From assembly GCA_964304625.1 (NCBI GenBank), contig OZ199840.1, positions 9,346,882 to 9,410,881 of the forward strand: DNA of 64,000 nt. The letters are read 5' to 3'. The notes beneath the pieces are model-generated. The model saw nothing but the letters and a program-made list of their open reading frames with translations. It did no database searches and was not told the origin of the DNA. The first letter of the stretch is position 1, and every line of letters begins with the position of its first letter. This document shows positions 1,188 to 58,300 of the stretch, one piece after another. Origin of the DNA: Kudoa neothunni (taxonomy: Eukaryota > Animalia > Cnidaria). The position numbers were made by a program, and so were the translations under genes.

Positions 1188-4100
1188 ATGGATATCATAA
1201 TCCAGTCCATAAAAAGTAATTCTATTATATTAGTGGATAAAAGGTGACATGTACAACTGCCTAATGTTGCATTTTATTGTTTGTTTTTGATACATCTAAC
1301 TCCTGCATCTCATTCACCTTTTATTTTATCTCTATTAATCCATAACGATTATTTCTATAGGTATCCAGCATGAAATTAGAAAAAAAGATGATCTAAGTAT
1401 ATTATATGTGTTTATATTGGATCATATGTTTGGTTGCTGATGTTTATATTGAACCGATTTTCGCCCTCACCGTTCGTCGCTTGCGTGGCTCAATGGTGAG
1501 AGCGTCGGTCTCCTAAATCGAAGGTTGGGGGTTCGAGTCCCCCCGTAGGCGGGCGTACTTATTGCACTGCTTTGTATTCCTAAAAATGCAGCAATGCAGG
1601 CGTTGCGTTACTTACTTAAACCTTTAGTTAGTCAGTTAGTTAGTTAGTTAGTTAGTGTTGTATTATATTTGATCAGTTTACTAACGTCGCACCAATACCG
1701 GCTAGATCTAGATTTGAATAATTAACCACTATTACACACTTTTATATATTTAATCAAGTCAGCTTTTTATCTATTTTCTCGTAGGCAATTATAGAAGCTT
1801 GTCCTCAAGGCGTGACGTTGATAAGACCACAGTTATCCAGAATGTATTTTCTTAATGTAAATTAGTTAATCGATCAGTTAAAATCATTTGTAGATCAAGC
1901 AAATGGGTGCACATAGTGTTCCAATCTACAAATGTCGCGATATTTTGATGGCACTATTGTATCTAGTCTATCAAGTAATTTCCTACATTATGCTATTCAA
2001 CCGCAAGTATTAACTACCATCCAAGGGCACACAATTCACTGATAGTGAAGCTAACGATATTTTTTTCTGTTTAACTCAACTCTTCACCAAAAAGGACCCC
2101 ATTGTGAAACGTCTGCTTCACATTTCGATAAAAGAACTCTCTAAACTTTCCAACGATGCGATTGTAGCCACTAGTAGTCTGATCAAAGATATCAACCTTA
2201 GTGTGGATTTTTACAAACCATCAGCAATGCGAGCTTTGGTTAGAGTAACCGACAAAGCGATGATAGGTTCTATAGAACGATACCTTAAACAATCTATTGT
2301 GTCCAGTTACAGTCCCTATGTTTCAGCGTCGTTAGTCTCATCGTATTGCATCCATAACCCCGACATGTTGAAGAAATGGACTAGCGAAATCACCCAAGCA
2401 CTCTCAAGTGGTCATCCTTCAGTGGAATACCATGCCATTGGTGTGTCATATTTGATGCGATGTGACGATAAATACGCACTCATCAAGATGATTTCCAAGT
2501 ACGGCACCTCAGTCAACTCTCCTATGGCTGTGGTGTTTATGATCAGAATCTGTACATCGTTGTTGATGCGACTGATGGCTGACAATGGTTCTCTTTCGAA
2601 TCGCCACAAATCAGTCGATCCACTTGCTCACCCATCAGACGATACGAAAATTCTGCTCTTGTTTCTTTCCAACTGTCTGAACACAAGAAGTGAAATCATT
2701 GGATTGGAAGCATGTCGAGCTTGTATTGCGCTCAAATCACTTCCCAACAAGATAGTCCAGCTTATTTTGAACATTCTCAAAATGCATTCCAACTCTTACA
2801 AAAGTTGTGTGCGATTTGCAGCTGTACGTACGTTGTACGATATGATCACCAAACACTCCTACCTAATGGATACCATATCGAAGGAGATGAAAGATCAGGT
2901 GGAATTTTTATCGAATGACGACAACAAAAATATATGTGTGTATGCGATAATTATGTCGCTGAAATTATCAACTCCATCCAATCTCAAAAAATCACTTAAA
3001 CTCTGCTCTCAATTGATGAAGGAGTTGAACGATGAATTTCGCGTCGAAATTGTTAAACATATGGCTGTGATTGCATCCAAACGCACTGAACATGGAGAAG
3101 TGTTGCTGAAGATATTTGATGATTGTTTACGTAACGAAGGTGGTTTTCCTTTCAAGAGTTCGGTTGTGAGTTCGATTGTGGTGCTGTTACGTGTAGATCC
3201 CATTGTGCAAAAAGCGTGTGTTCGCTCATTGTGTGAATACCTTGAGGATTGTGAGTACAGTAGGTTGGCGATTAAAATTATCCGACATATTGGTGTGCAT
3301 ATCGGATGTTGCAGCAATCCTTCCAGTTGTGTGCGTTACATTTTCAATCGTATATTATTGGATAAGTCGGAAATTCGATTGGCAGCTGTGCGCTGTTTAG
3401 CTCACATTGCTGGCCAGTATCAATCTCTTCGAGGTGATATCGCAGTTTTGTTACAACGTTGTATGGCCGACCCAAGTGATAATATTCGAATGGAAGCTGA
3501 TATGTATTATCGATTGTTATCCAATGGCAGTAATGAAGACCAACTAATAAAATCTTACCTCTGCTCCACAATCAAACCCAGCCCCTCTGATATACAACAA
3601 CTTAGATTTGCTGTTTCGCGCTATCTTACGGATGGGAATTTCGAACAAGCTTGCAATATCAACTCGTATAATATGGATGAATGTGTGGAGGGAGATAATT
3701 TGGATTCGGCTGCTAGCCCAAAAATCGAAAGGGCTATCAGCGACAGTTTCAACAACCAACCAGATGCCATGTCTGATCAGATCAACCGTGATGAGGGCGC
3801 TAGTGACGAAAAATCCCAACTTGAAAATGCCCGTAAACAATTACTAAAAGTTGGCGATATGTTTGATGGTTGTGGCCAACTGTTGTCCATGTCGAAATGG
3901 CCCTCCAACCTCACCGAAATCGAATCCGAATATGTGGTGAAAGCGACCAAATATGTATTCGATCAACACATTGCGATCGAGTTCATCATAAGAAACACCG
4001 TGAAGGATATTGAAGTGGATGAGGCCACCTTCGAATTCACACCTCCCGAAGAATTTACTGTAGTCGCATCGAACAAATCCCCTCCTATTGGCTACAATGA

Positions 4101-4679
4101 ACAAGGTTCGTGTTATTTCCTGATGAAACTGCCAATCGATCCCCTCAATGTTACCGGCTACTGCACAAATTGCAGGATGAAATTCAAAGTGAAAGACACT
4201 GTCAATAATGCCACCTATGATGATTTTTACGACGTTGAAGATGTACCTATTGTGGTCGGCGACTACGTTATCGGGGTGGAAACCTACTCATTTGATTCTG
4301 AATGGAATTCACTTGGCAGTGATCACGAACTTAACGATGGTTTCCTATTGGATACAGTTGACTCTATTCAAGGTGTGTTTTCGATATTTAGTAAAGTTGG
4401 GCGGTTTTCATTCGGTGTGTATTTTTAGGTGCTGTCGAAAAGGTGACGCAACTCCTGGCCTTAAATATTGTTCATGATAATGTTGTGCCGTCGACTAAAG
4501 GCATGCAAGGAACCAAGAGAATAGTAAAGATGTTCGGCGATTTTAAAGCTAACCATTCAATTGCTTGTATACTTGAATTTTCCAAACTACCCAACATTGA
4601 TGGAATCACTGTGAATGCTTTCTTCAGAAGTAGCGATCCTTTAGCCTGCGAGATTTTGGTTAGTTCATTATACAACTGA
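1188..4679 (+). CDS. COPG: Coatomer subunit gamma (gamma-COP), 6 exons: 1188-1215, 1361-1396, 1785-1843, 1894-1974, 2026-4372, 4429-4679
   Basis: Splicing at GT-AG sites gives a continuous frame: MDIIIQSIKSIQHEIRKKDDL...VDKTTVIQN...KCRDILMALLYLVYQGTQFTDSEANDIFFCLTQLF. Later motifs RFAAVRTL, EGGFPFK, LCEYLEDCEY, RYIFNRILL and LTEIESEYVV are characteristic of gamma-COP. Confidence 0.95.
1479..1551 (+). tRNA. tRNA-Arg (anticodon CCT), inside COPG intron 2
   Basis: Cloverleaf: acceptor GCTTGCG/CGTAGGC, D-stem GCTC/GAGC with TGG, anticodon stem TCGGT/ATCGA with loop CT-CCT-AA, T-arm GGGGG TTCGAGT CCCCC. Length 73 nt. Confidence 0.93.
1624..1655. repeat. (TTAG)n microsatellite in COPG intron 2
   Basis: ttagttagtcagttagttagttagttagttag. 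Confidence 0.85.
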
Positions 4680-6316
4680 TTACAATTTTTTCTAATTCCA
4701 TATTTTTCTTTTTTCTCCTGCACATTCTAATAACTAATAAAATTGATTCTTTTCATTATTTATATTGCGAATAAAGTCTGTTTCACGTGTTCCGATATTT
4801 TAATTTATTTTTTAACATCTTCATTCGTTTATGTGACCGTTCTAAAAATCTTTACATGCTCGCCTACCTATGTTAATCCATTGAAGTTTTCAATTGCAGA
4901 AAATTTCACATCTTTAAGTAATGTTAGTATTAGTATTTAATGAGAAATCTTAGTTTTTGTGTGTAAATTAATTATTTTTTAACAGGACAAATAATACAAT
5001 TGAAATGTTTTTGATATTTAAATTATACATTAAAACTCTTCAATATATTAATGGCTATCAAAATCACTAATATATAATGAAAAATATGAATTGGTAAGGC
5101 TAACTAACACTTTGCTTTTCGTATTACTGAAGCATTTTTATCATTTCAAATCAAAAACCCTTGATATTATAACTTATTATTTATAATTTAAATTATAAAT
5201 TAATTAATATCAAGGCTGGCGTTTTTTAAAAAAGGTGAACAGATTTTAAAATTGATTCTGAAGACGCATTGATTTATTTCACGATTATATGATTTTAAAA
5301 TTTATATTTTGTAATTTAGACTAATTAATTATGAAGTAGAAATAATTATATCGTCTAATGATCTAGAGATAATTTCGTAATAAGTCTGAAATTATATTGT
5401 ATTTTAAGAATTTCTAATCCTTGGTTTCCACGGTATTTTCAAAAATAATAATGCTATTTAACCTCCCTGTACTACGAGGTAAAAGGGTCACGCGTGTTCT
5501 GAAGGGGTCCCCCGGATCCAAATGCAGATTTGTCTTAATGGATCTTAATTTCTTTGTGTAATGCTTTAAACAATTTTACAACCATTTATAACGTGTTCTG
5601 TGTAGGAAAATAAATTAATTATGAAGCATTAATAGGCTACAAAACAGAGTTCCATAATGCACCAATATCGGCTATCTAAAATTAAGAAAGAATTTAATGG
5701 TAAAAAAATTAAAATTAAACATATTTCATCAGAAAAAAAGTAATTTGGTAAATGAAACACACTTTAAAGAAGAAATCGCAAGTAAACTTGATCCGAGGGG
5801 ACAGCAATGGCGGCAGCGTTTCCGTATAAAATTGGAAACAACAAATTAAAAAAAAGTTGATTAAATCGAATAAAGCTCTGTTGAATCTAATTTGTAATTT
5901 TTCAAGTATTTTTAATGATAATTCAAAATATTAGGTCTTCACAAAGCCCCTCATAATAATTAGTAACTCAAATATTTTCAACAAAATCTGACATAATGAG
6001 ATAACACATGTGCGATTTTGATGCTGAGCAATTGCACATCAATAATAAATAAATATCGAATATAAATTTGAAGCTTACGTTTAATTAATATGAACAATTC
6101 AAGAGATTGAGGATCGCAGCGTTATAAAGTTATAAATGAGAAAATCATCGCCAAAAATCAACATAATAATTTACAATCAATCCAATGGATTATTATCTAA
6201 CGGTGGGGATATGTTTTGACTTGAATTCAAACTAATAATTCTAACCAACTTGAGGTGTCTTGAATAGCCAATCCAATATATATAACCTAGAATTATCAAT
6301 CATCAAAATGTTTCCT

Positions 6317-7855
6317 TTAACATCGCATAAAACTACAAAAAATTAGTTGATCAATTAATAACCTACCCATAAGTAGCATCACATTGGACATAACACCAAG
6401 CAGTACATTATATTCCAATGAAAATAGATTTAAATTACAAAAATAACAAGCAGAAGAGTGATGGTTTGTTTGGAGAGGATATTTGTCAAAGTAACTCAAA
6501 CAGTTAGTGTATTGGGTGGTATTTGATCGAGAGTGCCAACACAGTGAAAAATTAAACAATAACACTAAATCATTTTCACACGTTGAAAATGGGATCAAAC
6601 AACTACTTGCGATTGCTAAAACGCTGAGATGAGTCCATATTAAATGGTTGGAATTAGTGTGGTTTCTGTTGACAGATTTCCCATCGTATAACTGCCAAAA
6701 TATAAAGAAAATTTGGCTGACCAAAGAGAGTCCATAATCAGCGCCAGTAACCAACAAATAAAACTGTTGATAGTTGATGGGGAGTAATGACTGGAACCAA
6801 TCACTGTTGAAACTGTAATGTTGAGCTAATAGGTTACATTTTGGGTAGGTTGAGAGAATAATATACAGATTAATAGTAGGTGTCAGCAGGAAAATCAACA
6901 CCACACCAACATATCGATAAAGAACAACCGCAAAAATAGAATATTTAATTTTTTCGCCCACAATAGGAGTTTGAGCATGAATAAAATGATATAAACGGAG
7001 GTTGGACAACAAAGCAAGTACACCCACAACTATGACTAGTCCAATTCCAGCAAAATGCGTAGTTACAATGGCATTATTGAAGCTGCATTCGGAGGTGGTA
7101 TAACGCACCGCTGACAATGGACTCAAAACAGTCGCAGATATGGAGGAAAAATTCACTATCATACACCACATCAAATACACACATGAGGCCGCAACTGTTG
7201 GGCATATAACAACCAACAGAATCAAACTAGTTTTGGGGATTTCTTCGATCAGATCTTCGATTTTTGTGAATATCAAAAACAAAGGGAAATTTCGAAGGAT
7301 TCTGTGTACAAATACACTCACAAATAAAGACGCTTGGTCAACAGCCGTCTTAAGGTTAATCATTTCGTCAGTGTTGTAATGTGAGGTAAGGATGTAAGTA
7401 GAAAATCCAACAACTATCAATCTGATGCCGTATGAGTTGTATAACACAGTGTGGAAAGTGTTGGTGACTGAGAACAATTTTGAGACAACCAACACACTAA
7501 AATCCAACAGAAATATGCCCATCATTGATATTACAATGTTCTGTGAAACCAACTCCAAAGTGACATCTATACAAATATTATTCGGAACCAACCCACCACA
7601 AAGAACAGTTCCATTGGTTCCAAAGCTATGATTGAGATACACAAGAAAATTGTTAAATGAGTAGTTTCTATTTTTAAGTACAATCATCAGGCCTACTACG
7701 ATCACCACAACCGACACATAAAATCCAGCATATACGACCACCCCAAACGTCACATTTTTAAGTAGGTGACTCACCATATAATCGACCAACAACACCAACA
7801 CAAATAACCCAAATGTGACCACCAAATATAACAGCACAATTGGAATATTATTCAT
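6317..7855 (-). CDS. Uncharacterised multipass membrane protein (512 aa, single exon)
   Basis: Long open frame in AT-rich DNA with roughly 10 or more hydrophobic segments and several N-x-S/T sequons. No family motif recognised. Confidence 0.7.
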   Translation of the reverse strand: MNNIPIVLLYLVVTFGLFVLVLLVDYMVSHLLKNVTFGVVVYAGFYVSVVVIVVGLMIVLKNRNYSFNNFLVYLNHSFGTNGTVLCGGLVPNNICIDVTLELVSQNIVISMMGIFLLDFSVLVVSKLFSVTNTFHTVLYNSYGIRLIVVGFSTYILTSHYNTDEMINLKTAVDQASLFVSVFVHRILRNFPLFLIFTKIEDLIEEIPKTSLILLVVICPTVAASCVYLMWCMIVNFSSISATVLSPLSAVRYTTSECSFNNAIVTTHFAGIGLVIVVGVLALLSNLRLYHFIHAQTPIVGEKIKYSIFAVVLYRYVGVVLIFLLTPTINLYIILSTYPKCNLLAQHYSFNSDWFQSLLPINYQQFYLLVTGADYGLSLVSQIFFIFWQLYDGKSVNRNHTNSNHLIWTHLSVLAIASSCLIPFSTCENDLVLLFNFSLCWHSRSNTTQYTNCLSYFDKYPLQTNHHSSACYFCNLNLFSLEYNVLLGVMSNVMLLMGRLLIDQLIFCSFMRC

Positions 7856-8376: not shown

Positions 8377-9633
8377 ATGAGTGGCAAGGTCCTGTTGATT
8401 TTATGTGTGAATCAAATTGAACTTTATCTAATGTAGACGGTGGCGAACAAACCCAAAATTCGTTGGACTAGAAAAAATCGAGTGCTTGTTCTTAGTGAAA
8501 GAGGCATCGGATTCAGGTAAAGTTGAAAATGTGGAATTCGATGTGTATATTGTTGTTAGAACCCGCCATCTTATGTTGGATGTGATAGCTATGTTGCCTC
8601 ATTCTAAAACAGAAAACAAAGTGGAAAAAGATCTCTCAGTTGAAGATATAAATGAGGTTTTTTCATTCTTATTCTATTAGTTTAATAAGTGAGTTTATAG
8701 TTGTGTGACCTTAGAAATTGTAAGTATTGTCTCTTTTTTCAGATGAGAAAGCACAAAGACACTTATTTATGGTATTTATGGCTTTATTATTTGATTGTTG
8801 TGTTAGGTCAGTTGGATTTCTGAAATAACTCCAAACTTTAGGATATCTTCAATTGAACAAGGACCATCAATCAAATTTCTCGTTGAAGGAAGTAAATTTA
8901 AACACCAAATTATCTGTATGTTTGGATTGGGGTTTTAGTTTACACAGTGGATGAGTTGAGCTTTAAAGGAAACAGCCTTAAGGGGAGTCGTCCTATACTT
9001 TCATTCTCAAAAGTAGTTCAAAATTCAGCATAAGTATTTCATGTAACACTCGTTGATTTCAGGAATTTGATGATCAATCAAGTACCGACCATTGTTATCT
9101 GGGAGTTGTGAAAAAATTACTAATCCACACGTTTGGAGTACCTTTGGGTCACCCTAAAAGCAAACCTTTTATCGATCATTGTATATCGTTTTCATTTTTG
9201 GACGGGAAGATATGGGTTAGAAACTATCAGGTAAATAGAATTGACGGTTTGTGAGTTGTTTTATGTTGGTCGAATAGATTGTGTATCCTGACACAGTGGC
9301 TCCAACCAAAACCTCAACCAAACAACTTGAAATGGTTGAGATCGGTCCTCGTCTTATAATGACTCCTATAGCTTTGTTCAAAGGTAGTTTCTGTGGCAGC
9401 GTTCTCTACAAAAATCCCTCTTATGTTTCTCCCAACACGGTATATATTGTTTTGTGGTGAAAATATGGCAACCAACAATGTTGTGTAACCTGATTTGTGT
9501 GTAGGTGCGCTCTTTGGAGAAAAAACGCGAGGGAATTCATACCAAAATTAAATTCGCGTCCAATATATTTAACAAACAAGTCGACCAACTTAGACACATA
9601 CCTGATGATCCAATCGACAAAATATTCAAATAG
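8377..9633 (+). CDS. BRIX1: Ribosome biogenesis protein BRX1 (Brix domain), multi-exon
   Basis: Spliced translation gives WTRKNRVLVLSERGIGFRTRHLM...PHSK...GPSIKFLVE...ELSFKGNSLKGSRPILSF...HPKSKPFIDH...IWVRNYQ...VEIGPR...YVSPN...DPIDKIFK. Introns are short GT-AG. Confidence 0.95.
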
Positions 9634-13929: not shown

Positions 13930-15734
13930 CTAAGTGTTTTTTTCATTTCCATTTTTCACATACCATAATTTTTTTAATGGATCAAAAAATAACAGTAAAT
14001 TCCTATCCAACTCAGACTGTGAAGAGTTGGCTGTGATGGACGAAATCCAATCATCAAAGTGCTGGCTAAAAAAGGGATTGACCAATGTGCCATATTGAGA
14101 GAATTGATCATAGGAGTATATTTTGGGATGGTGTTTTGAGTAAGGATTGTTCTTTAGACATTGTTGAGCGGCAACATACAACATAGCAACATCATCTTTG
14201 AGTAAGCTGCTGCCGAATATTTGGCAGTTTGTATGTTCAGATACCGCCTTTTTCAGTTCCCAGCCAGACGAAACAATTGGTGAATTTCTCTAATTAGCAA
14301 CCAATTAATTCAATAAATCAAAGAAATTAATTCAATCACATTTAGAACCACTAAAATAGGTTTATCATTAAGTTGGCGTCGGTTAATAAATTCGAGTAAT
14401 AATTTAGAAAAGTCTTTGAGTTGAATATGAATAATAGCATTATTATCTCCACCTTCGTTACGATATTTTATGTTAAAACGTTTTCTGTACAAAAAAATTA
14501 AATTTGAAACGTCCACAATAGCTTCAAATGATGTTTTCTTAACCAGTCGATCGAGTTTGATCAATTCCATATACAGCTTGGGTAGTTTTGATTCTGTAAC
14601 CCTAATTAATCCGCGTTTACATTGTTATCAACTTTAGAATAGAAAACCGTTTTAAGTTAGTAACAAACTGGTTAAGCGCTCTTCTAACACGATCTGCATC
14701 TAAAGTAAACCAAATTATCATCGCGGCTCGAATATCAGCGTTATAAGGGCAACTTACACTCGCACAAAAGTTCATTTTCTGTAGAACAACGAATGAATCT
14801 ACCATTCAGTTTTTTCAGTTGATCAAATTCTGTCTCATTCAAGTTTTGTTTCGTGTATTTTTTGAACATAATATAGGTGTGTAGATTTCTAAATAGCAGT
14901 TTCAATAAATAGGGCGTATTCGGCAACTATGGCACTTCAGAACAAGGGATTCATTCGTCATTAAGTTGGTTTCAGTTAGCTTAAGTTGGTCGGTGACGGC
15001 CAAATCAACTTGACCTTGTTGTTTTTGAGTCCATTTACTGGCAAGATCTTTTCTTAAATAAATGTATCTAACAAGTTGGTTTAAGAACTGGCTCTTCAAA
15101 TCTTCATCCCTTTTCCAATTTAAAAAATTCTCATTCAAAACACCGACAATTTTGGTCAGCAAATTTTTATCAACCCCGCATAGATTCTATGAGGTAATTA
15201 AAAATTTTAAAAATTCAATATAAAAACTTCAAATAAATAGGACCAATATTTGGATGGAATTTTTGTGGAAGCAAATGTAGTGATAAAACTCATTAACAAC
15301 AAATGAATAGAAGAATAATGCAGTTTGTAGTCACGGTGCAAACAAACAATAATATTTAGGAATTTAAATAATTTAAGATGGTTGTTCTCTATCATATCCA
15401 AATATGACACCACTAAATGTTTGTCTATTGTGTTGAAATAGATTTCTGGAGAGTGAAAAAGAAGGTAGAGCCATAAATCCACTTTCAGCTCATCATTATT
15501 TCTACCAGTATCGCTATCATAGCGCATACTTAGTAAAGTTAATGCTTTAAGTATGTCTTTGTTGTAATAGGCCATATTACTGTCAAATTCGAAATTGTGA
15601 AAAATTTGATTGTGAGGTAGCTTTTGAGAGGGAAGTTTTGTGGTTAATTTTATATAGAATGGTGTTTTGCCTTGTATGGTCACGACCTTTCTTCCTATAC
15701 CTGCTGGAAATATTTGGAAGTAACATTTGTTCAT
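13930..15734 (-). CDS. PRORP-like NYN-domain nuclease, paralog B (no presequence, Zn site apparently absent); about 6 exons
   Basis: The ORF fragments join through 40-60 nt introns. NYN motifs FEAIVDVSNL, KPILVVL, KDDVAMLYVAA and IYSYDQFSQY. The N-terminal region aligns with the neighbouring paralog. Confidence 0.7.
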
Positions 15735-15867
15735 TTAACGTTAAAAAACAGTCGTTTTAAACTACCATGTGATAATCCGCGCATGTGCATTGGTGAAAAT
15801 TTTGAAACATTCATCGAAATAACTGTTATTTTCCACACATTGATAGTTTAATTGTGTTGATAAAATA
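15735..15867. promoter_or_regulatory. Putative bidirectional promoter (133 bp between divergent ATGs)
   Basis: Divergent start codons at 15734 and 15868. Contains the near-palindrome GCGCATGTGC (~15779-15788), which resembles an NRF1-type site. Confidence 0.5.
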
Positions 15868-17964
15868 ATGAGGTCGGTTGTGCGAAAAAATTTTAAAATT
15901 TTACGCAAACCATCTACCACGCTAACAAACAGCAGTGCGAATAAGACATTTCAAGTGTTCCCAGTTGATCTGAGGGGGCACAAAGAAGTGATATTTTCAG
16001 ACACTTCACATTATTATTTGAAATGCCCACTGGTTTCAACCACCTCCCAAAATGAGGAACTATTCAGTAAAATGTCGCATTTACTGGAAAAATCCAAAGA
16101 AGTGCATTTCTACTGTAGAAATAGTTTACGGTCGTTAGCGTTATTACTGGAAGCGAAGAAAGATTTCAACAGCAACAACTTGAATCGACTGGAATATTTG
16201 ATCAGTGTGATTATTAATGAGTACCCAAATGTGATAACAAAGAGCGGACTTGGACCTCAAATCATTAGACAGTTTTTGGATGTGATTGCAAAGGTGAATC
16301 CTAAAGGAGAGAAAATGAACGATTGGCTTGGAGTGTTGTTTTTTGAAAACAAGTTAAAATGTGGTGTTGAAAATTTTGGAGACACATTTTCCCAATCAAC
16401 ACTGACAACGATCATGAAAAACTTTGTGCAAAATCCCGCGCAAATTTACGTAAACAACGTACATTTGGCCGACATCCTCGAAAGATACAATGATATCACT
16501 ACGCTTCGTGGAACTACTTTCATTGCCAACATGGTTGATATGTGTTTTCAGAGGGGAGCCTATTTTCGACCCGAACTAATCGAAATGTTGTACCGAAATT
16601 TGTTGGACTACAAGCTGAAAAGTTGTCAGTCGTTAGGAATCCGGTATTCGATTCCGCATTACATACTTAAACATATCGATTTCCAGCTGGATGGTATCAA
16701 CTACGTGTTAGATCGTTTAAAATTGTCGATGAATACAAACGAAGACGATTCAAAAGATGGCACTTTCTCTAGAGAATTATTTCAACCAGCCACAAATCAT
16801 TACAAGAATTTAGCTAGAAAGTTTGATTCAAATCCAGCTTCAAGTCAATTATGTTGTCAATTATTTTAGAATGTTAAGCCTGAAATTCGAGTACCTGTCC
16901 AAACGTTACGATAACTTCTATTCGAAGGATCTAAAGCAATTGATATCGCTGATGCCTCGCCAAAATTTGAAATTTATATCAACTGGTGGCTTGTCTTTTA
17001 CTGATTATATGGAGAGAAACAAAAATTGTGTTGTGTGTGGTGCAGAATGGAGTTTAAACATTAACACTGTTGAAAATTTAAAACGTTTTTCTGTGGTTAT
17101 CGATCGTTTTGTTGCTACTGCCGAAAAGTAGGCTGCTTATTTTTCATATGTGTATTATCATCTGCTCTTGTGTAGCGAAAATATTTAAATAAATGTTATT
17201 TTAATATTCTATCGTTGATAGCTTTATGAGAAAGTTTGACTTCAATCTACCCGAAGCTGCAACCAAATCCGCCCAACTTGATCCACTCCTTTCTAACCCA
17301 AACTATCACTATATTATTGATTTCAACAACTACATGCTTACTAATCAATCCAACTCAAATCAAGATATTAATTGGAAACAGCTAATAGATCAATTTTTCC
17401 ATGAATTCGAAAACTCTAGCTCCTTTGTGAGCAAAAATATTCTACTTGTTTGTCAGGTTTTTCGAACAAGATGGTTGCGATAATTTAGTTTAATTTATTT
17501 AGATGAGCAAATATCGACCCAAACACTCCAACAACTCATTTCTAACCTATCGCGATGTTGTGGAACGTGCCCATCGAACCAAATTTGTCCATTCGATCAA
17601 CGTCGATGGTTATTCTGATGATTTTGTGTGTTTGTATGTGGCAATGAAACAAATGCAAACAATACTCAGAACCAACAACCACACTCTACCCCTTCCTACG
17701 ATTAAATCCAACGATATCTATAAACAATATGCGTCTCTAGTGGATTTGGATCTGAGAAATCACTTCGATACTTTGTTAGATGTTGTAGTTTCCCCTATGT
17801 GTGAGACAGCGTCCAGGAGCACCTCACCAAATAGTTCCAACGTTTCTCAGACGAAAATTTTGCGTCCGCTTTCTTCAGCTGCTTCCTCCTCGGGAAATAG
17901 CTCCACATGTTCACATATCGTTACTAGCAAAGCCATATATTGTGTCAATTTTAACTCTAATTAA
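15868..17964 (+). CDS. PRORP: PRORP/MRPP3-like protein-only RNase P, paralog A; about 4 exons
   Basis: Basic, S/T-rich, acid-free N-terminus (MRSVVRKNFKILRKPSTTLTNSS), then a helical region, CVVC, NYN motifs YIIDFNNY / SDDFVCLYVAM / IKSNDIYKQY, and C-terminal SHIV...IYCV. This matches the split Zn site of PRORP. Confidence 0.78.
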
Positions 17965-19308: not shown

Positions 19309-19990
19309 TCAATTCCTTATTTTTATATTTACTCCTAAACAAAAAATCAGATATATATCCGGGAAAGCTATCCGGACTTTTGTGGGTCGCGTTTCTGTAT
19401 TTGCGTTTGAAAACTCCCCAAGTAGCTTCGCTTCGATTCGATTAGTATGGGCATCTTCATTCGATACAAATCTCCTTTTATTTATCACCTTTGCATGAAC
19501 AGACCCTAAATCGGCCAGTCGATTATACCCAGTCCAACCATCTGTCCGTATTGTGGGTGGAACCGTCTTCAACATTTTAGATGATTATTCCCTCGAGAAC
19601 ACTTTGATTTCTACGGTGGGAAATTTTTAAGAACCAGTTTCAATCTTCATCTATCCTGTCTATCATCCAATACTATTGGTTCTTCAATATTCTACCTACA
19701 TTGTATTTTTTTATTTGAGATAGCGGTCTCGTCGATCTGTACAACAACTCCTATTCCACCGATTTTTTTGGATTCTTCATCAAGTTTTTAAGCCATTAAA
19801 TCGTGAATAATACTCTTCCATTCAAAAATAGAGGCATTTAACCCTATTTTGAAATATAATTGTAGTGTTCCGTAAGTAGTCGTTGGGTTTTGGATGACGT
19901 AAACCACAAAAAGAAAACTTTTCCACAGAGGAAGTTTGGATAATTCGAAAATACTATTTTTTCGGCTGAAATTTGATATAAACCCCCCTA
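19309..19990 (-). mobile_element. Merlin (ISXO2/IS1595-like DDE) transposase relic
   Basis: IGGIGVVVQIDETA (rc of ~19725-19765), TIRTDGWTGY and HTNRIEA motifs, frameshifted. Confidence 0.8.
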
Positions 19991-20104: not shown

Positions 20105-20883
20105 TTATGTTTTCCGTCTCCATTGGAATTCGCCAAGGAACTCATTAATACCATCCATACTGACTGTTCCATCATCATTTATTGGCGAGATTTTGTACTT
20201 GATTGCACCCCATGCCCCATCAATTGTGTTGGTGTGGGCGCCTGTCTCATTATCTACGTATTCTATGCCGTGATTGACAGTGAGATGGTGGTTGAAATTA
20301 TGAAGTTTTTCGTAACTCTTGAAACAATCAATGATAGTCGTCGATCCAGTTTTTACATAACTTTTTATGATATTTATTAGAGTCTCAACATTTCTATCTG
20401 GAACCTCAAACAAAAACATTTCTCTCTCTGGCGTCCTCTCTACACCTACAAGAACCCACGCATCATGACCTCGATTATGTTTCACCTCCCCAAACTTGGA
20501 ATCGTCTATTTCCACAATTACTCCCTCTCCACCAATTATGATGTCTCCGAAATCCAAACTATCAGCCACCATTTGTCTAAGATAGTGACAGTAATTCTGA
20601 TCAGATTGATAGATATTACGCCAACCATCCAATAGTAAGCTAACTCCAAAAAATCATTAGCTTATAGGTTCATGTTGTTAAAAAAAGTTGATTCAAAAAT
20701 TGAAACTTCTTTTCTACAATTTCTTAAGCGGCATCGCCAGTTTTTTCGATGAAGCGTAAATCTAGCTTCCCCACACTTAATGCAATTTGTCGGTTCTTTA
20801 AGAATACCATTATCAATAAGGTATTTAATAGCGTTATGTTCATTTTTAAAAATTTCCCCAAATGACTTCTTCGATGATACCAT
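20105..20883 (-). mobile_element. Merlin (ISXO2-like) transposase, interrupted
   Basis: N-terminal Zn ribbon CIKC...WRCRLRNCRKEVSIFESTFF, then GGEGVIVEIDDSKF, WVLVGVER, DCFKSY, TVNH and HTNTIDGAW. Confidence 0.88.
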
Positions 20884-27737: not shown

Positions 27738-29557
27738 TTATTCTCGAGCTGGTATTGATGAAGGATATTCGACGTTTGTTGCAGATTGTAATAAGGGTTT
27801 GGCGGGAGCAATGTGGAGCTCATTTGTTGTTGCATTGGATTGCTATTGGTATTGGTTGAAGAGCCGCTGGCGCCACCGCCACTTGTGTTGTTGGTGCTGG
27901 CAAAAAGACCGCCACTAGCACAAAAATTTCCCAGCTAGACAAAAATTAATACTCATAACGTAGCAGGGATTATTAGATGTTTACATTGGCCAAATTTTGT
28001 GCCTGATTCAGTGAAAGAGTGGCCGATGAGGCACCCCCACTACTTGTTGAGGGATTAGCCACTCCCAACGACTGATTGAGTTCATCCTGGGTCCCATATA
28101 TGTTTAATATGTTTCCAATTTTGGTAGAATCAAGGTTGCCTAAATAGTTGCGCAATTCCTATAGAAAAATTATTAATTTTGTCACAACATAAAAAAATAC
28201 CTCATTTGAGATACCAGTATTATTATCATTGTTCATTGTAGATGATGAGCCAAGGGATGAGAAAAAGCTGGTGCCGCTTGGAAAGAATTGAGATGAACCC
28301 AAATTTAGCTGATTGCTACTGCCTCCGGTTGTCATGGAAGGATCAATATAAGTTGTCATAGAGGAAGATCCACTATTATTCACATTACTGCTTCCTCCGG
28401 AAGGATGACTGCTAGGGAGAGTTTGCATTTGGGTGGAGCTTTGGGACCCTATCAATTTACTCCCGGGATAATTAATAAGGGAGGGATTTTGATAGTTGAG
28501 AGGTGGCATTCCAATAGGGTTCGAAGGATTGGTGGTGGAGCCAATATTTTTTAGTATGTTGGTGTTGGAGTATGGTACGTAGGAGGGGTTCATGGAGCTA
28601 GAACCGGAAGTCATTTGGCCAGTGTGGCTGAAACTGGGGTTGATAAAACGATGTTGACCACCGGTGCTTGTTGTTGTGTAGAAAGTAGACAAGTTTGTAT
28701 TATACAATGGATTTTGAAGTGAATATCCTTTAGATATGCCGAATACTTGTGTGTCCATGGTTGGACTATCAAAATCATTCATGGATTTGCTGTCACCCTT
28801 ACGTCTTCTTTTTCTTGGCTTGTAGGTGTAGTCAGGGTGAAGAAGGTTGTGATTTTCACGCAATTTGGTGGACAACTAAATTCACACACACGCACACACA
28901 CATATATTATCGATAATAGGAGTAATAATCAAATACAGCAACATATGGTTCCTTCTCGGCAGATGACATTCGTCCCCATTCTCTTCCCAACAATTTGCTG
29001 ATCTCACAATTCAACAGATTTGGATAGGCCATAGCTATTCGCCTTCTAGCTTGTTTGGACCACACCATAAAAGCGTTCATTGGTCGTCTCACATATCCCC
29101 GGTTATCCTCTTGTGAGGTGAGTTCAGCATAAATAGCTTCCTCATTGAAATTTGCTCCAATTGACGAGATTGCCGCCTGGACCGACTCTACCGATGGTAG
29201 CGATGAGATATTTGATGAGGGATTATAGTTTGGACTTAGAGAAGTAGGCTTTATTATTTCATAGTTATTGCTGACAGAATTATCATTATATTTATTTACA
29301 GTTGTGGCGGTATTTGAAGTGGATTGAGTTGGAAGGTTATTATATCGATTCAACGAATAGTTGATATTGTTGTTGTTGTTGTTTTGCTGATTGTTCCCAC
29401 CTGTGGATGAGGGGTTATTGGAAGAAGTGCTGGTGTTGGTGGGTGCATTATTTGAGCCGGGAACATTATTATTGTTGATATTGCTGTTACGAGAAGCTTG
29501 ATCTGAAGTCTTATTAGAAGACGTAAGTGAACTTGTGCTTTTGGAATTATTGTCCAT
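27738..29557 (-). CDS. Sox-family HMG-box transcription factor, 4 exons (29557-28935, 28875-28201, 28158-27985, 27934-27738)
   Basis: HMG box VRRPMNAFMVWSKQARRRIAMAYPNLLNCEISKLLGREWGRMSSAEKEPYVA|LSTKLRENHNLLHPDYTYKPRKRRRK, with N/S-rich flanks. The frame is continuous across GT-AG introns. Sox subgroup not assignable by eye. Confidence 0.9.
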
Positions 29558-32166: not shown

Positions 32167-33465
32167 TCAATTGGTTGGGATGAGGAATTTGACTCGAGCT
32201 GCGTCTGCAAGCAGAGCTTTAATTTCCAACTCGGAGTAGATAAGTTTCTGACATAGATCTTCGATACGAGTTTCCAATCCAGATTTGAGTTCATATCCAT
32301 AATAATAAACAGTACCATATGCAAATTTTGCCGTTCTTTTGGCAATACAAGTGTCGAACATATTTTTTCTATAAGCCTTCAATTTGTTGGCTTCTTCGAC
32401 AATCTTTGGGTTTATTAGAAGAGTTTTTTTGAACTTTTTACGAAAATAATCATACACATAACGGTCAGCATAATTCAATTCGTTGATTTTGTCCTTAATT
32501 TTGTCGGTTAACGTTTCTTTTTTTGTGCCGTAACTTTCGTTCATATTAAAAGTTAAAATATCAGTGTAGGTTAGATTCAACCGATCCTTCAGAATGATTA
32601 AACTCTCATCAAAATACTCCATTATCATAACCAAATCAAAATCATTCTCCACCTGCTTGATTATATTGTCCAAATTTGAACGGTGCATGTCCTCTTTGTT
32701 GTAACCCAAATCAAATAGTATCCCATTGACTAAGAGTTGCATGAGAGGCATTTTGTTGGTCCATTTCAATAACCTTTTGTCAAATTTTTTATCAAAAAAT
32801 GTCTTTATAGGAGTTGGGCTGGTGCTCACACCAAACAAACTCCCAAGTCGAAAATATTCAAACGTTGATCTCCAACCAGTTACAGGGTCCCTCATTATAG
32901 TAAAATAGAACGTGGATTTCCTAGGGAAAACCCTTTCACAATTCGATCGGTCAAATCTCACATGCTCCATGTATATATCAAAAATTCCACTGATATCGCC
33001 CGTATTTTTTGGTATATAGTAATAGTTTGAGTTAAATCTCACAGGCCATACATGTATAATTCCCTTTCCATTCGTCTGCAGCAGCAATGGAGTCAGACCA
33101 TTATTTAGAGTGAGTCTGGCCAATATATTGTAAACTGTGGAGGAGCCGGTTTTGTGTGTTTTTAGAAAGAAAATTTTTTTGCTGAGTTCTTTTCTCCACC
33201 CCAACGATACAACCATGTTGTGAGGTAATGTGGGGAGCTTTGTTCTAGAAAATCTCACCTCCATCATATTCACTTGGCTATTATCATCCGTTGAAATCGA
33301 TATGTGGATTAGAATCATCATCGCACATATCAAACTGATAAATATCAGCAGTCTGTTTGCTGGACTCGGTTTTTGCATTTGTTCAGCGTGCAACTTATAA
33401 CTCCCTACACATATATCGCTGACAATGAAAGCAAACAACACACTTAAATGATTACATTCACACAA
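32167..33465 (-). CDS. Galactose-3-O-sulfotransferase family protein (type II membrane, single exon)
   Basis: TM anchor LLIFISLICAMMILIHISI, 5'-PSB motif FLKTHKTGSST, 3'-PB motif FTIMRDP, and FDLVMIMEYFDESLIILK plus NYADRYVYDYF. The true start may be the downstream MQKPSP. Confidence 0.92.
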   Translation of the reverse strand: MCECNHLSVLFAFIVSDICVGSYKLHAEQMQKPSPANRLLIFISLICAMMILIHISISTDDNSQVNMMEVRFSRTKLPTLPHNMVVSLGWRKELSKKIFFLKTHKTGSSTVYNILARLTLNNGLTPLLLQTNGKGIIHVWPVRFNSNYYYIPKNTGDISGIFDIYMEHVRFDRSNCERVFPRKSTFYFTIMRDPVTGWRSTFEYFRLGSLFGVSTSPTPIKTFFDKKFDKRLLKWTNKMPLMQLLVNGILFDLGYNKEDMHRSNLDNIIKQVENDFDLVMIMEYFDESLIILKDRLNLTYTDILTFNMNESYGTKKETLTDKIKDKINELNYADRYVYDYFRKKFKKTLLINPKIVEEANKLKAYRKNMFDTCIAKRTAKFAYGTVYYYGYELKSGLETRIEDLCQKLIYSELEIKALLADAARVKFLIPTN

Positions 33466-49800: not shown

Positions 49801-51972
49801 CAAGGTGTGACTCCATACGCCACTCAAAGAATTTCTAATATCGCTGGATGTTTTCAACATTTTTCCCCTTGGAAATACTCATTATGGGAATAAATGGGAA
49901 AACGTTGACGTTGATGAACTAAATGGCTTTATTGGATGGATCTTATATATGGCTATCCATAAAGATCGACGAGAACCATTAGTTGATTTGTTTAGTTCTA
50001 CTGAAGGCAGGCAAATATACAAGGATTTATTTTCTCTGCGAAGATTTAGGCAATTAACCAGAGCGATCCATTTTGACGACACAAACACAAGAGAGCAGAG
50101 AAAATTACTGGATAAATTTTTCCTCTTTAGAGAGATCTGGGATATCTGGGTAAATATTGCGAGCAAAAGTTATAATCCAGGGTTTGATGTGTGTCTTGAT
50201 GAACAGTTGGTATCCTTTAGGGGTAACTGCTCCTTCAGGCAATATATAAAGAATAAACCTGCGAAATACGGGTTAAAAATTTTTTTACTAGTAGATCCAC
50301 AAACTTCATATGCATTAAATATGGATGCATATATTGGTAAAAAATGTTCGACTGATGCCAAAGTTCATGATGTTGGTAAGAATATCGCTCTCAAATTAAC
50401 TGAAAATCTAATTGGTTCAGGATGCAATTTGGGTTGCGATAATTATTTTACATCGATTCCTTTGGCCGATGAATTGATCAAAAGAAGAATGACCATAATT
50501 GGTACAATTCGTAAAAACAAACGAGATATACCACCATTCCTACTATTTAATAGAAGAACCCCGGTGAATGAATCAAAATTTGTTTGCAATGGAAAGAAAA
50601 TGTTGGTATCGTTCGCTCCAACGAAAAATAAGAACGTCCTCCTATTGTGTTCATCTAATCATAACACAAAAATTTCTAGAATATTTCCTCATAAGCCAGA
50701 TGTTATCCTACAGTATAATGCTGCTAAAGGAGGCGTTGACACAGTGGATCGTATGTTGGCGTCGGTTCCAGTGAGACGATTCACCAGAAGATGGCCGTTA
50801 GTTGTGTTTTACAACATGATTGATATCTCACTTGTAAATGCGTTTGTAGTTTACAGGGAGATATTTAACGAACCAAATATTAAAAGAAGAGACTTTTTGA
50901 AAAAAGTCGCTTTTGAATTATCGGAACCATTAAACATTAGGAAGAACAAAATTCCACAGTTAATAGAGCGTACAAGTTCCATAAATCCCCGACATTCCGT
51001 TCGAAAATATTGCAAAAAAATAGAAATTATTTAATGAAATGAAAGCCTGTGTAGTTTGCTGAATCACGTTTAGATTTCCAATTTTACATTACGAAAATAG
51101 AAAAATTTATTTTTGTTTCAATAAATCAATTATAGTTTATGGATTTTTTACATTTTATAAGGATTTTAGGAGAATTCTACAAACAGTCATTTTAAATTTC
51201 GGCAATCGCGCGTTATATAGACAATATGCACGTACGCACTTGCGCGGATAAATTTAAAACGTGGAAATAATATGGAAAACTTACAAATTTTATAATTTTA
51301 TTTCACTTTTAGTTAGTAAATAATCTAAGAATTTGAAATATGCAAAAAACTTTTGGGGTCTTTTTTCACCCCATTGTTACTCGGAAGGTGCCCAATTTTG
51401 TGTTACTTAGAAGGTTAAAATTATATAGAGCGTTGACCATGAATGTGAATTTGGATTTATGGGAAAAGGTTGTCAACAAACCGTATTTTTGTGGATAGAC
51501 TGCAACTCAACTCAATTGATATAGAGCCACCATGTTGGATGCGACGTGTTCATTCCATGCCTTTCAAAATACCTAAAACGCGACACCAAACTTAATAATG
51601 AGTCACCAATGGACAAAATTTGCACGCATGTGTCTTTTAATCTGCCAAGCACTGATTCCATAAAATTCATACCCATCCAAAATTGCATCTCGATTTTCCC
51701 ATCTAATACCATCGTCGAATATACCACCTATACTGACCATAAACAATTTTTCATTTATGTCACAAAATCAGAAAAAATTGGTAAAATTTGATTAAAAATA
51801 TTATTATCATTATTAACAACGGGATTTAGTTAATAGGAAAAATCTTATTTTGTTTCTCTTAATCCTGTCAGCACCAGTTCTTATAACGATTTTTGTCATC
51901 GTAGGAGTTTACATCCAACGAAAATCATACAGCAATCTCTCAACTTACAAACACTTTAAAAGTGTCTTGTAA
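46887..51972 (+). CDS. Divergent integrin-beta-like protein, copy 2 (piggyBac in intron 16)
   Basis: Same 19-exon structure as copy 1, with exons open where checked. Intron 16 is expanded from 58 nt to 2253 nt (49176-51428). Confidence 0.8.
49224..51414 (+). mobile_element. piggyBac element with defective transposase
   Basis: TTAA TSD (49220-49223, 51415-51418), perfect 14-bp TIR CCTTCTAAGTAACA, subterminal repeats, DDD motifs CLDEQ/GCDNY/GGVDTVD. In-frame stop at 49780 and truncated Cys-rich tail. The empty site is visible in copies 1 and 3. Confidence 0.95.
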
Positions 51973-55321: not shown

Positions 55322-58300
55322 AGAAAATAGGTCACGATAAACTTGTCTTCCCTCTTCTAACCCAAACAATTCATTGACTGGTTGTTGATTATCGTCAAGT
55401 ATTCCCATTAACAATAAACATCCGATGAATCCAACGAATTCGACACTATCTAATTGCTTTCAAACATCACCAAAATTTTTTTTACCGTATTAATTCGTAT
55501 GTTTTAAAATTAAATCATACATTTCCTGGCGAAAAATCCCTTTAAACGTATCAATAATTTCATTTACATTCTGCAAAACGAAGGATGAAACATTAGTACG
55601 ACTGGTCAAAATATTTTCGGCTGCAGTTCTAGAAGTCGAGGGTTTTTCAATTGTCCATAAGGTTCCATTCTTATCTATTAACACTCTAACGAACTTGGGG
55701 TCTTTTGGACCCCAAACCGATATTAAACGTGGTATAGAATTTTGCGTAGTAGTTTGCAAAGCTTTTTATCCTGGCTGTTCTCATAAATTTATAATAGTTA
55801 AAACTTACAAAACTTTGGAAAAAAAAATAACATAGCTCAGAAAAATAAAATTATCCTTTAACGAACTTGGGGTCTAAAAGACCCCAAGTTTTTTTTGTTT
55901 CGTTATTGTTAAAAAATATAAAAATAAGTAACATAAAAATGCAGAAATTTCTATCGACGAAACTTTGAGAAAAATGACAATTTAATGTGTAAATTAATCC
56001 TCTTTAATCCCCTCGGGAACCGCCAGTACTGTTGTATACAATCGTTAACAAAATTCTTACAAACTGTTGACTTGCGTTTTTTAAATCATTTTATAACACT
56101 AAATTATATTTCGAAAGTGTTTATTATTTTCTTAATATCGATAAAGTTTTAGGAAATACATTTTTAATACACATGAACCCTACATTACTGGTAGGTTTAA
56201 AACTAAATGATATTTTTATATTGAGATGATGTTCTAAATTAACTTTTACTTCCTTCAGCACTGATGATTTTTAACCAAAAAAATGATATCACTCCATATG
56301 GTTATTTCGATGCACGAGTGAGTTATATTTTTTGAAGCGTGATGAGTAGTTCGGAGGAATATATAGATGAGATCGAATCGTCTGTTAGTGAATTAGATGA
56401 TTTTTTGTGTGAGGTATCCGACAATACGAAAGGGATGTTAGGTGACGAGTGTCCTACAGATGCTACGGTAGACAAAAATGGAACGGTGTGGACTTTGAAA
56501 AAGCCCCTTTCATCGACAGTTTGACTTGAAAATACACTTTCTTCTTGACCAGGTCCAACGGCATATTCAATTCAAAGAATCAAAAATATTGAAGATTGTT
56601 TCACAATATTTTTTACAAATAATATTTGTGGTGAAATAATAAAATATACAAATGAATTTGGAAGAAGTCGCTTCAGAGATTCTTGGACTGATCTAGATGA
56701 TGTTGAGTTTAAGGCATATTTGGGAACACTTGCTTTGATGGCTGTTCATAAAGATCGAGAGGAGCCTTTAATCGAGCTGTTTAGTCTTTCCGAAGGAAAA
56801 GAATTATATCGTCAACTTTTTTCTTATAACCGCCTCAGACGAATAACGAGATCTCTGCATTTTGATGACGCAAATACTAGGGCTCAAAGAAAGGCGACTG
56901 ATAAATTCTGTGCCATCCGTAGTGTATGGAATATGTGGGTTGACATTTTGCCGTTGTGTTTCTCTCCTAATGAGGATATAACTGTAGATGAGCAGTTAGT
57001 GCCATTTAAGGGAAGGTGCCCGTTTAGGCAATATATGCCATTAAAACCAGCCAAATATGGTTTAAAATTCTTTGTGCTGGCGGACCTAAAGGATAAATAT
57101 GTTCTTAACGTCTCTCCATATCTTGGAAAAAACGGAAGTGAAGCTTGTCGAACCTTAAACGTGGGTGAAAACATTGTACTTTCTCTGACAACCCCATTTC
57201 ACTATTCTGGAAGAACGGTTGTTGCAGATAATTTTTTCACTTCTCTGGGGTTTGCAACAAAATTTCTGGCGAAACAGTTAACATATTTGGGAACCATTCG
57301 TCACAACAAACGAGATCTGCCATCTTGTGTTCTTTCAAACAGACGAAGTGAATTGTACAGCACCACATTTGCGTTCTTCAAAAAAAGTATGTTGACATCA
57401 TACGTAAACAAAAAAGGTAAGGCTGTTATTATATTATCAACTGGAACCAACAATACAGATACAGACAAGGAAATGGGCAAAAATAAGCCAGTAACTATCT
57501 TACACTACAACAGAACAAAGGGTGGTGTAGATACCATTGATAGAATGTTGTCGTCTGTTTCAGTTAGAAGATTTACTCGACGATGACCAACTTATCTTTA
57601 ACCAATGCTTTTTTGCTATTTAAATATATTTTTGTTGAACAAAAAAATGCGACGTCAATTTATGAAAGAGATGGCCCAAGTCCTTTACCGACCATTCCTT
57701 GCTAAAAATACACCCGACAAGAAAATTATCAAAAGGAGTTATTCAGCTCTCTCCGCTAAACCAGTAATTGCAGATTCTAATTTGAAAAAGAGTCGATGCG
57801 AATTTTGTCCTCGAGAGACTGATAAAAAAACTAGCACCCGCTGTGTTAGCTGTAGTAGCTTTTTCTGTCGAGACCATTCATCAAAACAATGTAAGTTTTG
57901 TTGAAAATAATACTAGTTTTATAAAAAAATATAATGTGTATTGTTTTTATTATTTTGCGTTATTAGATTTGTTTCATGTTACTGCCGAATGTTTACGAAG
58001 CGCTGTTTAAGGCAACCGAGCCAGATTAGATAAGATTAATGGTTTTATGAAATGTAGTTTCTCTGAAAATTCATTCGATAAAAATTCATTATAATTTTTG
58101 TATCGTTTAATAATATTTTTTTGGTTATGTTCATGCAATGAAAACTTGGGGTCTAAAATACCCCAAGTTCGTTGGAGGGTAGTCATTTTTACATAACTTA
58201 GAGGGTTAAAGAGTCAGATGGAACATTGGTTTCAACTTCCGAATTATCTGACGACGCATCACATATAAAGGAATAATCCAGGTCAGAAGAATCAGTATCA

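Follow-up and report, generated by a model that had tools for sequence, protein, structure and literature searches.

The PRORP of animals, MRPP3 (Pfam PF16953 and PF17177), is a protein of about 600 amino acids, in which a presequence is followed by a helical half and by a C-terminal nuclease containing four aspartates, flanked by a CxxC pair and by a histidine and a cysteine. MRPP3 is single-copy in animals, and a single ancestor is expected in cnidarians (PMC4558845). Paralogous PRORPs are found in trypanosomes and plants. Trypanosoma brucei has no RNA-based RNase P and hosts two PRORPs, one of which carries a presequence. PRORP1 is the nuclear enzyme, and PRORP2 is located in mitochondria in which no tRNA is encoded, and has been proposed to be an RNase P serving other RNAs only (PMC3807811). 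The ribonucleoprotein (RNP) enzyme has been lost also in plants, where the organellar PRORP1 cuts, in addition to tRNAs, tRNA-like elements at the ends of mitochondrial mRNAs (PMC10941002). PRORP and RNP forms of RNase P are not known to share one compartment in any eukaryote (PMC10941002). We describe here a pair of PRORP-like genes, A and B, found head-to-head in Kudoa neothunni. Kudoa are fish-parasitic myxozoans, tiny relatives of jellyfish. The two genes are located between positions 13930 and 17964 of a 64,000-nucleotide stretch of DNA (assembly GCA_964304625.1, contig OZ199840.1, positions 9,346,882 to 9,410,881 of the forward strand), hereafter the window, to which coordinates refer unless another contig is named. 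The assembly derives from low-coverage reads of infected tuna, and consists of three chromosomes (40.2 Mb) and an 18,219-bp mitochondrial contig, with a GC content of 30% and a median intron length of 49 nt (PMC12239612). All the 40,260,978 bp were searched, in four contigs, of which the fourth is the mitochondrial one. A literature search found no paper mentioning both PRORP and Myxozoa, and the locus is apparently undescribed.

The Kudoa locus resembles each of these systems in part. The protein encoded by gene A has the size and the apparent layout of MRPP3. Differently from other animals, Kudoa appears to have two copies rather than one, both beyond the reach of the Pfam models, and its mitochondrial DNA offers no tRNA substrate. 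Motif 1 has F or V in place of G/A, motif 2 has QY in place of DH, and B lacks zinc ligands. As in T. brucei, there are two paralogs, one of which has a putative presequence; in contrast, the genes of the RNP enzyme have been kept in Kudoa, and the two paralogs are adjacent, head-to-head and unequal. The order of the motifs is the same as in Arabidopsis PRORP1-3, but the plant proteins feature canonical signatures and recognisable PPR motifs. Ctenophores are the other animal group whose mitochondrial DNA has lost all tRNA genes; they have lost MRPP3 as well (PMC4558845), while Kudoa appears to have kept and duplicated a PRORP. The absence of canonical tRNAs from Kudoa mitochondrial DNA is, beside the two PRORP-like genes, the main surprise of this analysis.

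Gene A (15868-17964, plus strand) encodes 635 amino acids in four exons (15868-16820, 16870-17127, 17222-17456 and 17503-17964), interrupted by introns of 49, 94 and 46 nt. Gene B (13930-15734, minus strand) encodes about 508 amino acids in the working model, in six exons (15734-15228, 15186-15010, 14926-14758, 14699-14648, 14601-14340 and 14289-13930). In agreement with a previous reading of this DNA, made from sequence only, the two genes are divergent and 133 bp apart, with start codons at 15868 and 15734, respectively. The spacer (15735-15867) presumably is a bidirectional promoter; a 28-nt stretch in it (15737-15764) resembles the DNA directly preceding the start codon of the A ortholog described below (L011:636-662; empirical p 0.02), and is a possible core-promoter element. 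Both gene models are open-frame and feature GT-AG introns. A codon model trained on 37 long open reading frames (ORFs) of the Kudoa genome assigns coding scores, in frame, to all the exons of A and to the four main exons of B; once the frame is shifted, the scores of the main exons turn strongly negative in both genes. The B start codon is directly preceded by an in-frame TAA, as already reported, and a second in-frame TAA is found two codons further up. Neither these codons nor the frame changes in the middle of B are assembly errors, because no gap interrupts the match of short-read contigs to the assembly, either in the start region or in the B middle; public runs covering the locus are low-depth DNA contigs from one sample, probably the same fish used for the assembly.

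The spliced A and B sequences were joined in order to number residues, measure motif spacing, compute statistics on the N-termini and produce shuffles. The ancient paralogy of the two genes, which had been proposed on the basis of short matches, is borne out by the alignment of exon pairs and by two common intron positions. The N-terminus of B matches A just past its leader (residues 28-93 of A and 6-68 of B; E 0.002, shuffle p 0.003). On the nuclease side, the exons carrying motif 1 and the last exons align with E values of 2e-5 and 4e-8, respectively (shuffle p 0.003 each), and the three exon pairs are collinear. Introns 4 and 5 of B interrupt the same codon positions, in the same phase, as introns 2 and 3 of A, so that A and B arose by gene duplication. 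The middle of B is about 100 residues shorter than that of A. Of the short matches, the CGV tract is found in both proteins but is not kept in the ortholog of A, and a six-residue match (NLKRFS) was discarded as evidence of homology, since the common intron position places part of it inside a B intron. No third PRORP-like copy was found in searches of the Kudoa genome.

One true relative (P0001, E 7e-17) was identified when the last exons, aligned, served as query of an exhaustive HMMER search; it is located on a 5,984-bp contig of the run SRR31175926 (here L011); a second match (P0002) is a tandem-repeat artefact. Word-indexed homolog searches detected nothing except P0001, and no relative was found in JGI metagenomes. 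The L011 protein is the ortholog of A. It is 615 amino acids long, has the same three intron positions and is 34-43% identical to A, depending on the exon. The same Sox (HMG-box) gene lies downstream, on the opposite strand, in both species, and its HMG region is 85% identical; Sox identity and synteny suggest that L011 derives from another myxozoan. The Sox gene, found tail-to-tail with A, spans 28081-29557 (minus strand) in the window and 3284-4846 (minus strand) in L011, and the gap separating it from A is approximately 10 kb in K. neothunni and 0.7 kb in L011. Site patterns (27:10:17 and 17:8:4) place gene A nearer to its ortholog than to B; the duplication plausibly predates the split of the two species, or B evolved faster.

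The PRORP signature was searched as stated in PMC5039416, and compared with Arabidopsis AtPRORP1, the key residues of which are C344, C347, D399, D474/475, D493, H548 and C565 (PMC3858429, PMC3562450). A CxxC pair, the putative first zinc half-site, is found in A at 17027-17038 (C371 and C374; both cysteines are invariant in the ortholog). The aspartate of motif 1 is located 63 residues from the second cysteine and 66 from the first, the latter distance being 55 in AtPRORP1. Motif 1 (HYIIDFNN, containing D437; 17307-17330) fits the consensus (D/E/T/H/N/P/G)h3DxxN, with F at the G/A position. Motif 2 (17617-17730) consists of DD (521-522), 28 residues, SND (D553), and QY replacing DH. The putative second zinc half-site (H620 and C629; 17914-17943) resembles, with mismatches, the (W/Y/F)HxP and (W/F)xC signatures, and reads WHIF...CYC in the ortholog. 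In B, motif 1 is EAIVDVSN (14502-14525, minus strand), and motif 2 (14092-14196, minus strand) is DD, 25 residues, SYD, followed by QY. The pattern DDx25-28(S/T)xD is thus found in A, in B and in the ortholog, where it is DD, 28 residues, TND and QY. The residues separating motif 1 from motif 2 are 80 in A, 73 in the ortholog and 85 in B, the range stated for the signature being 50-80 amino acids. Overall, motif spacing in A and its ortholog is close to that of AtPRORP1, and the LY.A tract after DD is PRORP-like. Four aspartates (D437, D521/522 and D553 in A; D332, D421/422 and D450 in B), corresponding to the catalytic D399, D474, D475 and D493 of AtPRORP1, are invariant in A, in B and in the ortholog. 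The D...DD...D core reported in the sequence-only reading is therefore present in both genes, but the NYN label that came with it reflects the order of the motifs and is not accompanied by a profile match.

A split zinc site is found in A, where C371, C374, H620 and C629 are all kept in the ortholog, and is missing in B. The C-terminal end of B (13930-14000, minus strand) retains the aromatic tracts FFDP and WYV, but no histidine or cysteine zinc ligand, and no CxxC precedes the nuclease in any of the GT-AG models tried; a CHSC tract at about 14935 was discarded as the CxxC of B because no GT donor completes it. Taken together, eight key residues of A are invariant in the ortholog. A relaxed version of the full pattern (CxxC; h3DxxN; DD...(S/T)xD; H...C) is found in this order in A and in the ortholog. 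When each of the two proteins was shuffled 200,000 times, this pattern never appeared, and the core of the nuclease, taken alone, appeared in about 0.1% of cases; relaxations were chosen after seeing the sequences, so that these figures provide support and not a formal p-value. The N-terminal region of A (15940-16820) is modelled by AlphaFold as a short beta-rich start followed by about 15 helices, with a pLDDT confidence score of 37. This low-confidence helical half is found at the position taken by PPRs in PRORPs, and its identity as PPR is putative. The size of A, the location of the nuclease at the C-terminus and the helical N-terminal half all fit PRORP. Motif order, split zinc site, ortholog and shared introns make it probable that A is PRORP-derived; neither gene, however, can be filed as an established member of the family, as profile and structure searches, made exon by exon, gave no match. 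The PRORP-like ancestry initially suggested is supported by these features.

Gene A starts with a leader of about 24 amino acids (15868-15939), which is basic, as originally noted, and has neither D nor E before residue 34. The leader contains the 11-residue segment with the highest amphipathicity in the protein (moment 0.80). In the ortholog, too, a basic leader is found, equal in length and unrelated in sequence (moment 0.74). These features fit a putative mitochondrial presequence, and A probably acts in mitochondria. The 18,219-bp mitochondrial contig contains no tRNA detectable by ARAGORN in standard mode or by Rfam. Protein genes abut; the large subunit rRNA shares their strand, and no tRNA separates it from them. 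Myxozoan mitochondrial DNAs are held to lack tRNAs, and earlier annotations of tRNAs have been judged to be errors (PMC11034133).

The interpretation that we favour, at slightly less than an even chance as a whole, is that A is a mitochondrial descendant of PRORP working at junctions other than tRNAs, and that B is a mitochondrial nuclease or partner acting with it. A would be a very divergent Kudoa derivative of animal MRPP3, in which a presequence and a helical arm for RNA binding are combined with a split zinc site of the Cys2-His-Cys type and with a two-metal endonuclease having four aspartates. Once imported into mitochondria, it would most likely no longer make tRNA 5' ends, because Kudoa mitochondrial DNA encodes no canonical tRNA. 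It would probably cut instead the tRNA-free mitochondrial polycistron at structured junctions (tRNA-like remnants or hairpins), setting free rRNAs and mRNAs. A would probably work without TRMT10C and SDR5C1. These partners of the animal mitochondrial RNase P were not detected in Kudoa, but their absence is not proven. The genome search with TRM10 (PF01746) was blank, but is uninformative, as it also missed the essential RNase Z (PF13691). Genome-wide, no more than six SDR (adh_short) genes were detected, and none shows the motifs that we assume to be typical of HSD17B10 (SDR5C1). B would be an old inverted duplicate, which lost the cleavable presequence, about 100 residues in the middle and the zinc ligands, and kept the four aspartates. 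Co-expressed with A, it would most likely serve as second nuclease or as partner in the same mitochondrial processing, and would be imported by means of its basic, acid-free N-terminus. A heterodimer of the two, envisaged in the sequence-only reading, is conceivable.

Several observations weigh against this interpretation, in addition to the choice of the relaxed pattern after inspection of the sequences and to features of B described below. The strict motif 1, (D/E/T/H/N/P/G)h3D(G/A)xN, fails in all three proteins, although only at the G/A position, occupied by F in A and in the ortholog and by V in B. The strict motif 2, DDx15-39(S/T)xDx3DH, fails because DH is QY in all three, and the replacement removes the fifth aspartate of the active site as listed in PMC5499597. 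The HxP part of the strict signature is not matched, and flanking W and P residues deviate. Pfam, PDB and Foldseek searches were made exon by exon, the nuclease domain being split over three exons. Pfam, run on A, B, the window and the ortholog, gave nothing above cut-off, PF16953 and PPR models included. PDB searches with single exons, or with profiles built from 2-3 sequences, returned chance rows only, and nothing usable was obtained from the ESM Atlas, queried by features and by structure. AlphaFold models are of low confidence (pLDDT 37 for the first exon of A, 48 for the last one), and neither Foldseek nor VIA matched them to PRORP or PIN structures, weak rows with helical repeats being obtained for the first exon. 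Lastly, the one RNA run tried gave zero reads for the stretch.

The location of B is less defined than that of A. The first 48 residues of B (15591-15734, minus strand), homologous to the mature N-terminus of A, are acid-free and have a net charge of +7. This is the longest acid-free stretch in B (p about 0.009 from composition), the first acidic residue being at position 49; the matching part of A contains three acidic residues. The segment could be an uncleaved mitochondrial signal. Against it, the amphipathic moment is only 0.49, and the part of A to which the segment aligns is conserved and probably folded. On this basis, a mitochondrial location of B has about an even chance. A non-mitochondrial role of B, as hypothesised at first, is nearly as probable.

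If B were nuclear or cytosolic, A would be the mitochondrial PRORP, and B would work beside the RNA-based RNase P on some pre-tRNAs or tRNA-like RNAs. We regard this combined reading as unlikely. B starts exactly where the A leader ends, and cannot be extended upstream. No usable splice acceptor is found between the upstream TAAs and the ATG, and an upstream exon was discarded because no acceptor retains the conserved FQxFP. The four aspartates have been kept, and PRORP paralogs have been similarly split among compartments in plants and trypanosomes. Moreover, POP5 was not detected in the genome. Other components of the RNP enzyme are nevertheless present. The gene for the nuclear RNase P RNA (G000:C1:3428803-3429106, minus strand) is 304 nt long, matches RF00009 at full length with conserved regions intact, and scores 28.9 bits, just over the Rfam cut-off of 28 (E 5e-6); its GC content is 51%, in a 30% GC genome. 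RPP30 (E 1e-31), POP1 (4e-11), POP4 (3e-5) and an RPP21-like gene (4e-4) were also found. The RNase MRP RNA was not found with RF00030; this blank and that of POP5 are partly attributable to the low sensitivity of the searches. Nuclear tRNA 5' processing thus most likely stays with the RNA-based enzyme, and B would have to share a compartment with it, a situation without known precedent, as noted above. In addition, a simple pattern search detected no basic cluster of the nuclear localization type in B, the N-terminus is of the acid-free kind described, and the zinc ligands have been lost; the C565 mutant of AtPRORP1 is impaired in activity (PMC3562450). Should B prove to be nuclear or cytosolic, it would be the first animal PRORP outside mitochondria, and the first case of a compartment shared by both forms of RNase P.

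Upstream of B, a 27-codon ORF, basic and acid-free, is found in another frame (15814-15731, minus strand). Its stop codon overlaps the ATG of B (ATGA), and the insertion of a single A would join the two frames and provide B with a presequence. Its use as such, by an upstream exon or a frameshift, was discarded: short-read contigs match the assembly, and the ORF scores non-coding.

It is somewhat less probable that B is a decaying duplicate, or a scaffold of minor catalytic importance, the two frame changes in its middle being frameshifts. Introns 1, 4 and 5 of B are secure, whereas the second and the third are uncertain. As modelled, the latter have a GC content of 40-43%, secure introns being at 15-29%, and a portion of intron 2 (15009-14944) scores as coding. 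True introns may possibly be shorter (17 or 47 nt, and 31 or 58 nt, respectively), or there may be real frameshifts. Coding score and homology are best with a candidate 17-nt GT-AG intron (14943-14927, minus strand), which would be very short by animal standards. B has lost the zinc ligands and about 100 amino acids, no ortholog of it was found by HMMER and word-indexed homolog searches, and the 663 bp upstream of A in the L011 species do not contain it. All this fits decay, and part of it weighs against a role of B next to A. Still, B is more distant from A than the ortholog of A is, yet four of its exons contain approximately 430 codons uninterrupted by stops, with a codon bias that fits the frame. 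The four aspartates and the canonical shared introns have been maintained, and both frames can be recovered by splicing out GT-AG introns of 47 and 58 nt, which is an ordinary length. B, if dead, died very recently.

The assignment to PRORP has to be weighed against other nuclease groups. A and B might be PIN/NYN nucleases of another subfamily (Regnase/ZC3H12, N4BP1 or KHNYN-like), or a lineage-specific fusion, engaged in cytoplasmic RNA decay. The D, DD, D core of Regnase (D141, D225/226, D244) is similarly spaced (PMC5499597), and the 84-residue interval from D to DD in A equals that of Regnase; the core alone does not separate the two families. The lack of PRORP and PPR profile matches points in the same direction. 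However, PF11977, the Regnase profile, is blank too, both genome-wide and exon by exon. In Regnases the nuclease is central and is followed by a CCCH finger. No CCCH array is found at the C-terminus of A or B, and A is set apart by its split zinc site, with CxxC before and H..C after the nuclease, by the helical N-terminal half of 350 amino acids, known from a low-confidence model, by the terminal nuclease and by the leader. Regnase and N4BP1-type proteins have neither the split site nor a presequence. The shuffles reported above agree with this, the full pattern being much rarer than the core. Membership in another subfamily is accordingly improbable for these genes.

Another possibility concerns the substrate. 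A could still be a true tRNA 5' enzyme, which processes imported cytosolic pre-tRNAs with leaders, or aberrant mitochondrial tRNAs missed by scanners. Kudoa mitochondrial DNA was once annotated with a few candidate tRNAs (PMC4492933), and ARAGORN in permissive mitochondrial mode yields 14 candidates, versus 2-4 in shuffles. The ARAGORN candidates fall inside coding genes or arrays of hairpins, and the best of them turned out to be a hairpin; the annotations, as mentioned, have been judged to be errors (PMC11034133), and tRNAs imported into trypanosome mitochondria are mature (PMC3807811). We deem a function of A in tRNA maturation very unlikely. The discarded candidate, a cloverleaf at C4:16493-16572, corresponds to an isolated, perfect 21-bp hairpin (G000:C4:16493-16573, minus strand; -48.9 kcal/mol, z -9.3), followed by GCCA. 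The hairpin is found on the coding strand, some 760 nt downstream from where the last mitochondrial gene ends, and is a possible terminator or processing signal. Another mitochondrial hairpin is found just after cob (approximately 8900-9020).

The proposal of the sequence-only reading that B replaces the RNA-based nuclear RNase P, for which only the missing presequence of B and the plant and trypanosome precedents speak, is contradicted by gene content (RNase P RNA, RPP30, POP1, POP4 and the RPP21-like gene are all present), and can be practically dismissed.

If A is a mitochondrial PRORP descendant acting on non-tRNA junctions, the locus would provide an animal counterpart to the question raised by trypanosome PRORP2, that is, the role of an RNase P where no tRNA is encoded. 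A would then be a candidate enzyme for the release of mitochondrial rRNAs and mRNAs in the absence of tRNA punctuation. B may in turn represent a natural test of the need of PRORPs for the zinc site and the final DH pair.

Other features of the window are of minor interest. A tRNA-Arg(CCT) gene is located at 1478-1552. The gene at 2104-4428 is presumably coatomer gamma-like, and the one at 32167-33465 presumably encodes a galactose-3-O-sulfotransferase-like protein. A 512-amino acid ORF at 6317-7855 has the features of a multi-pass membrane protein. The segments 19309-19575 and 20105-20632 (minus strand), and 49949-51034 and 56720-57586 (plus strand), are plausibly transposase remnants, which we take to be Merlin/IS1595-like and piggyBac-like from their motifs.

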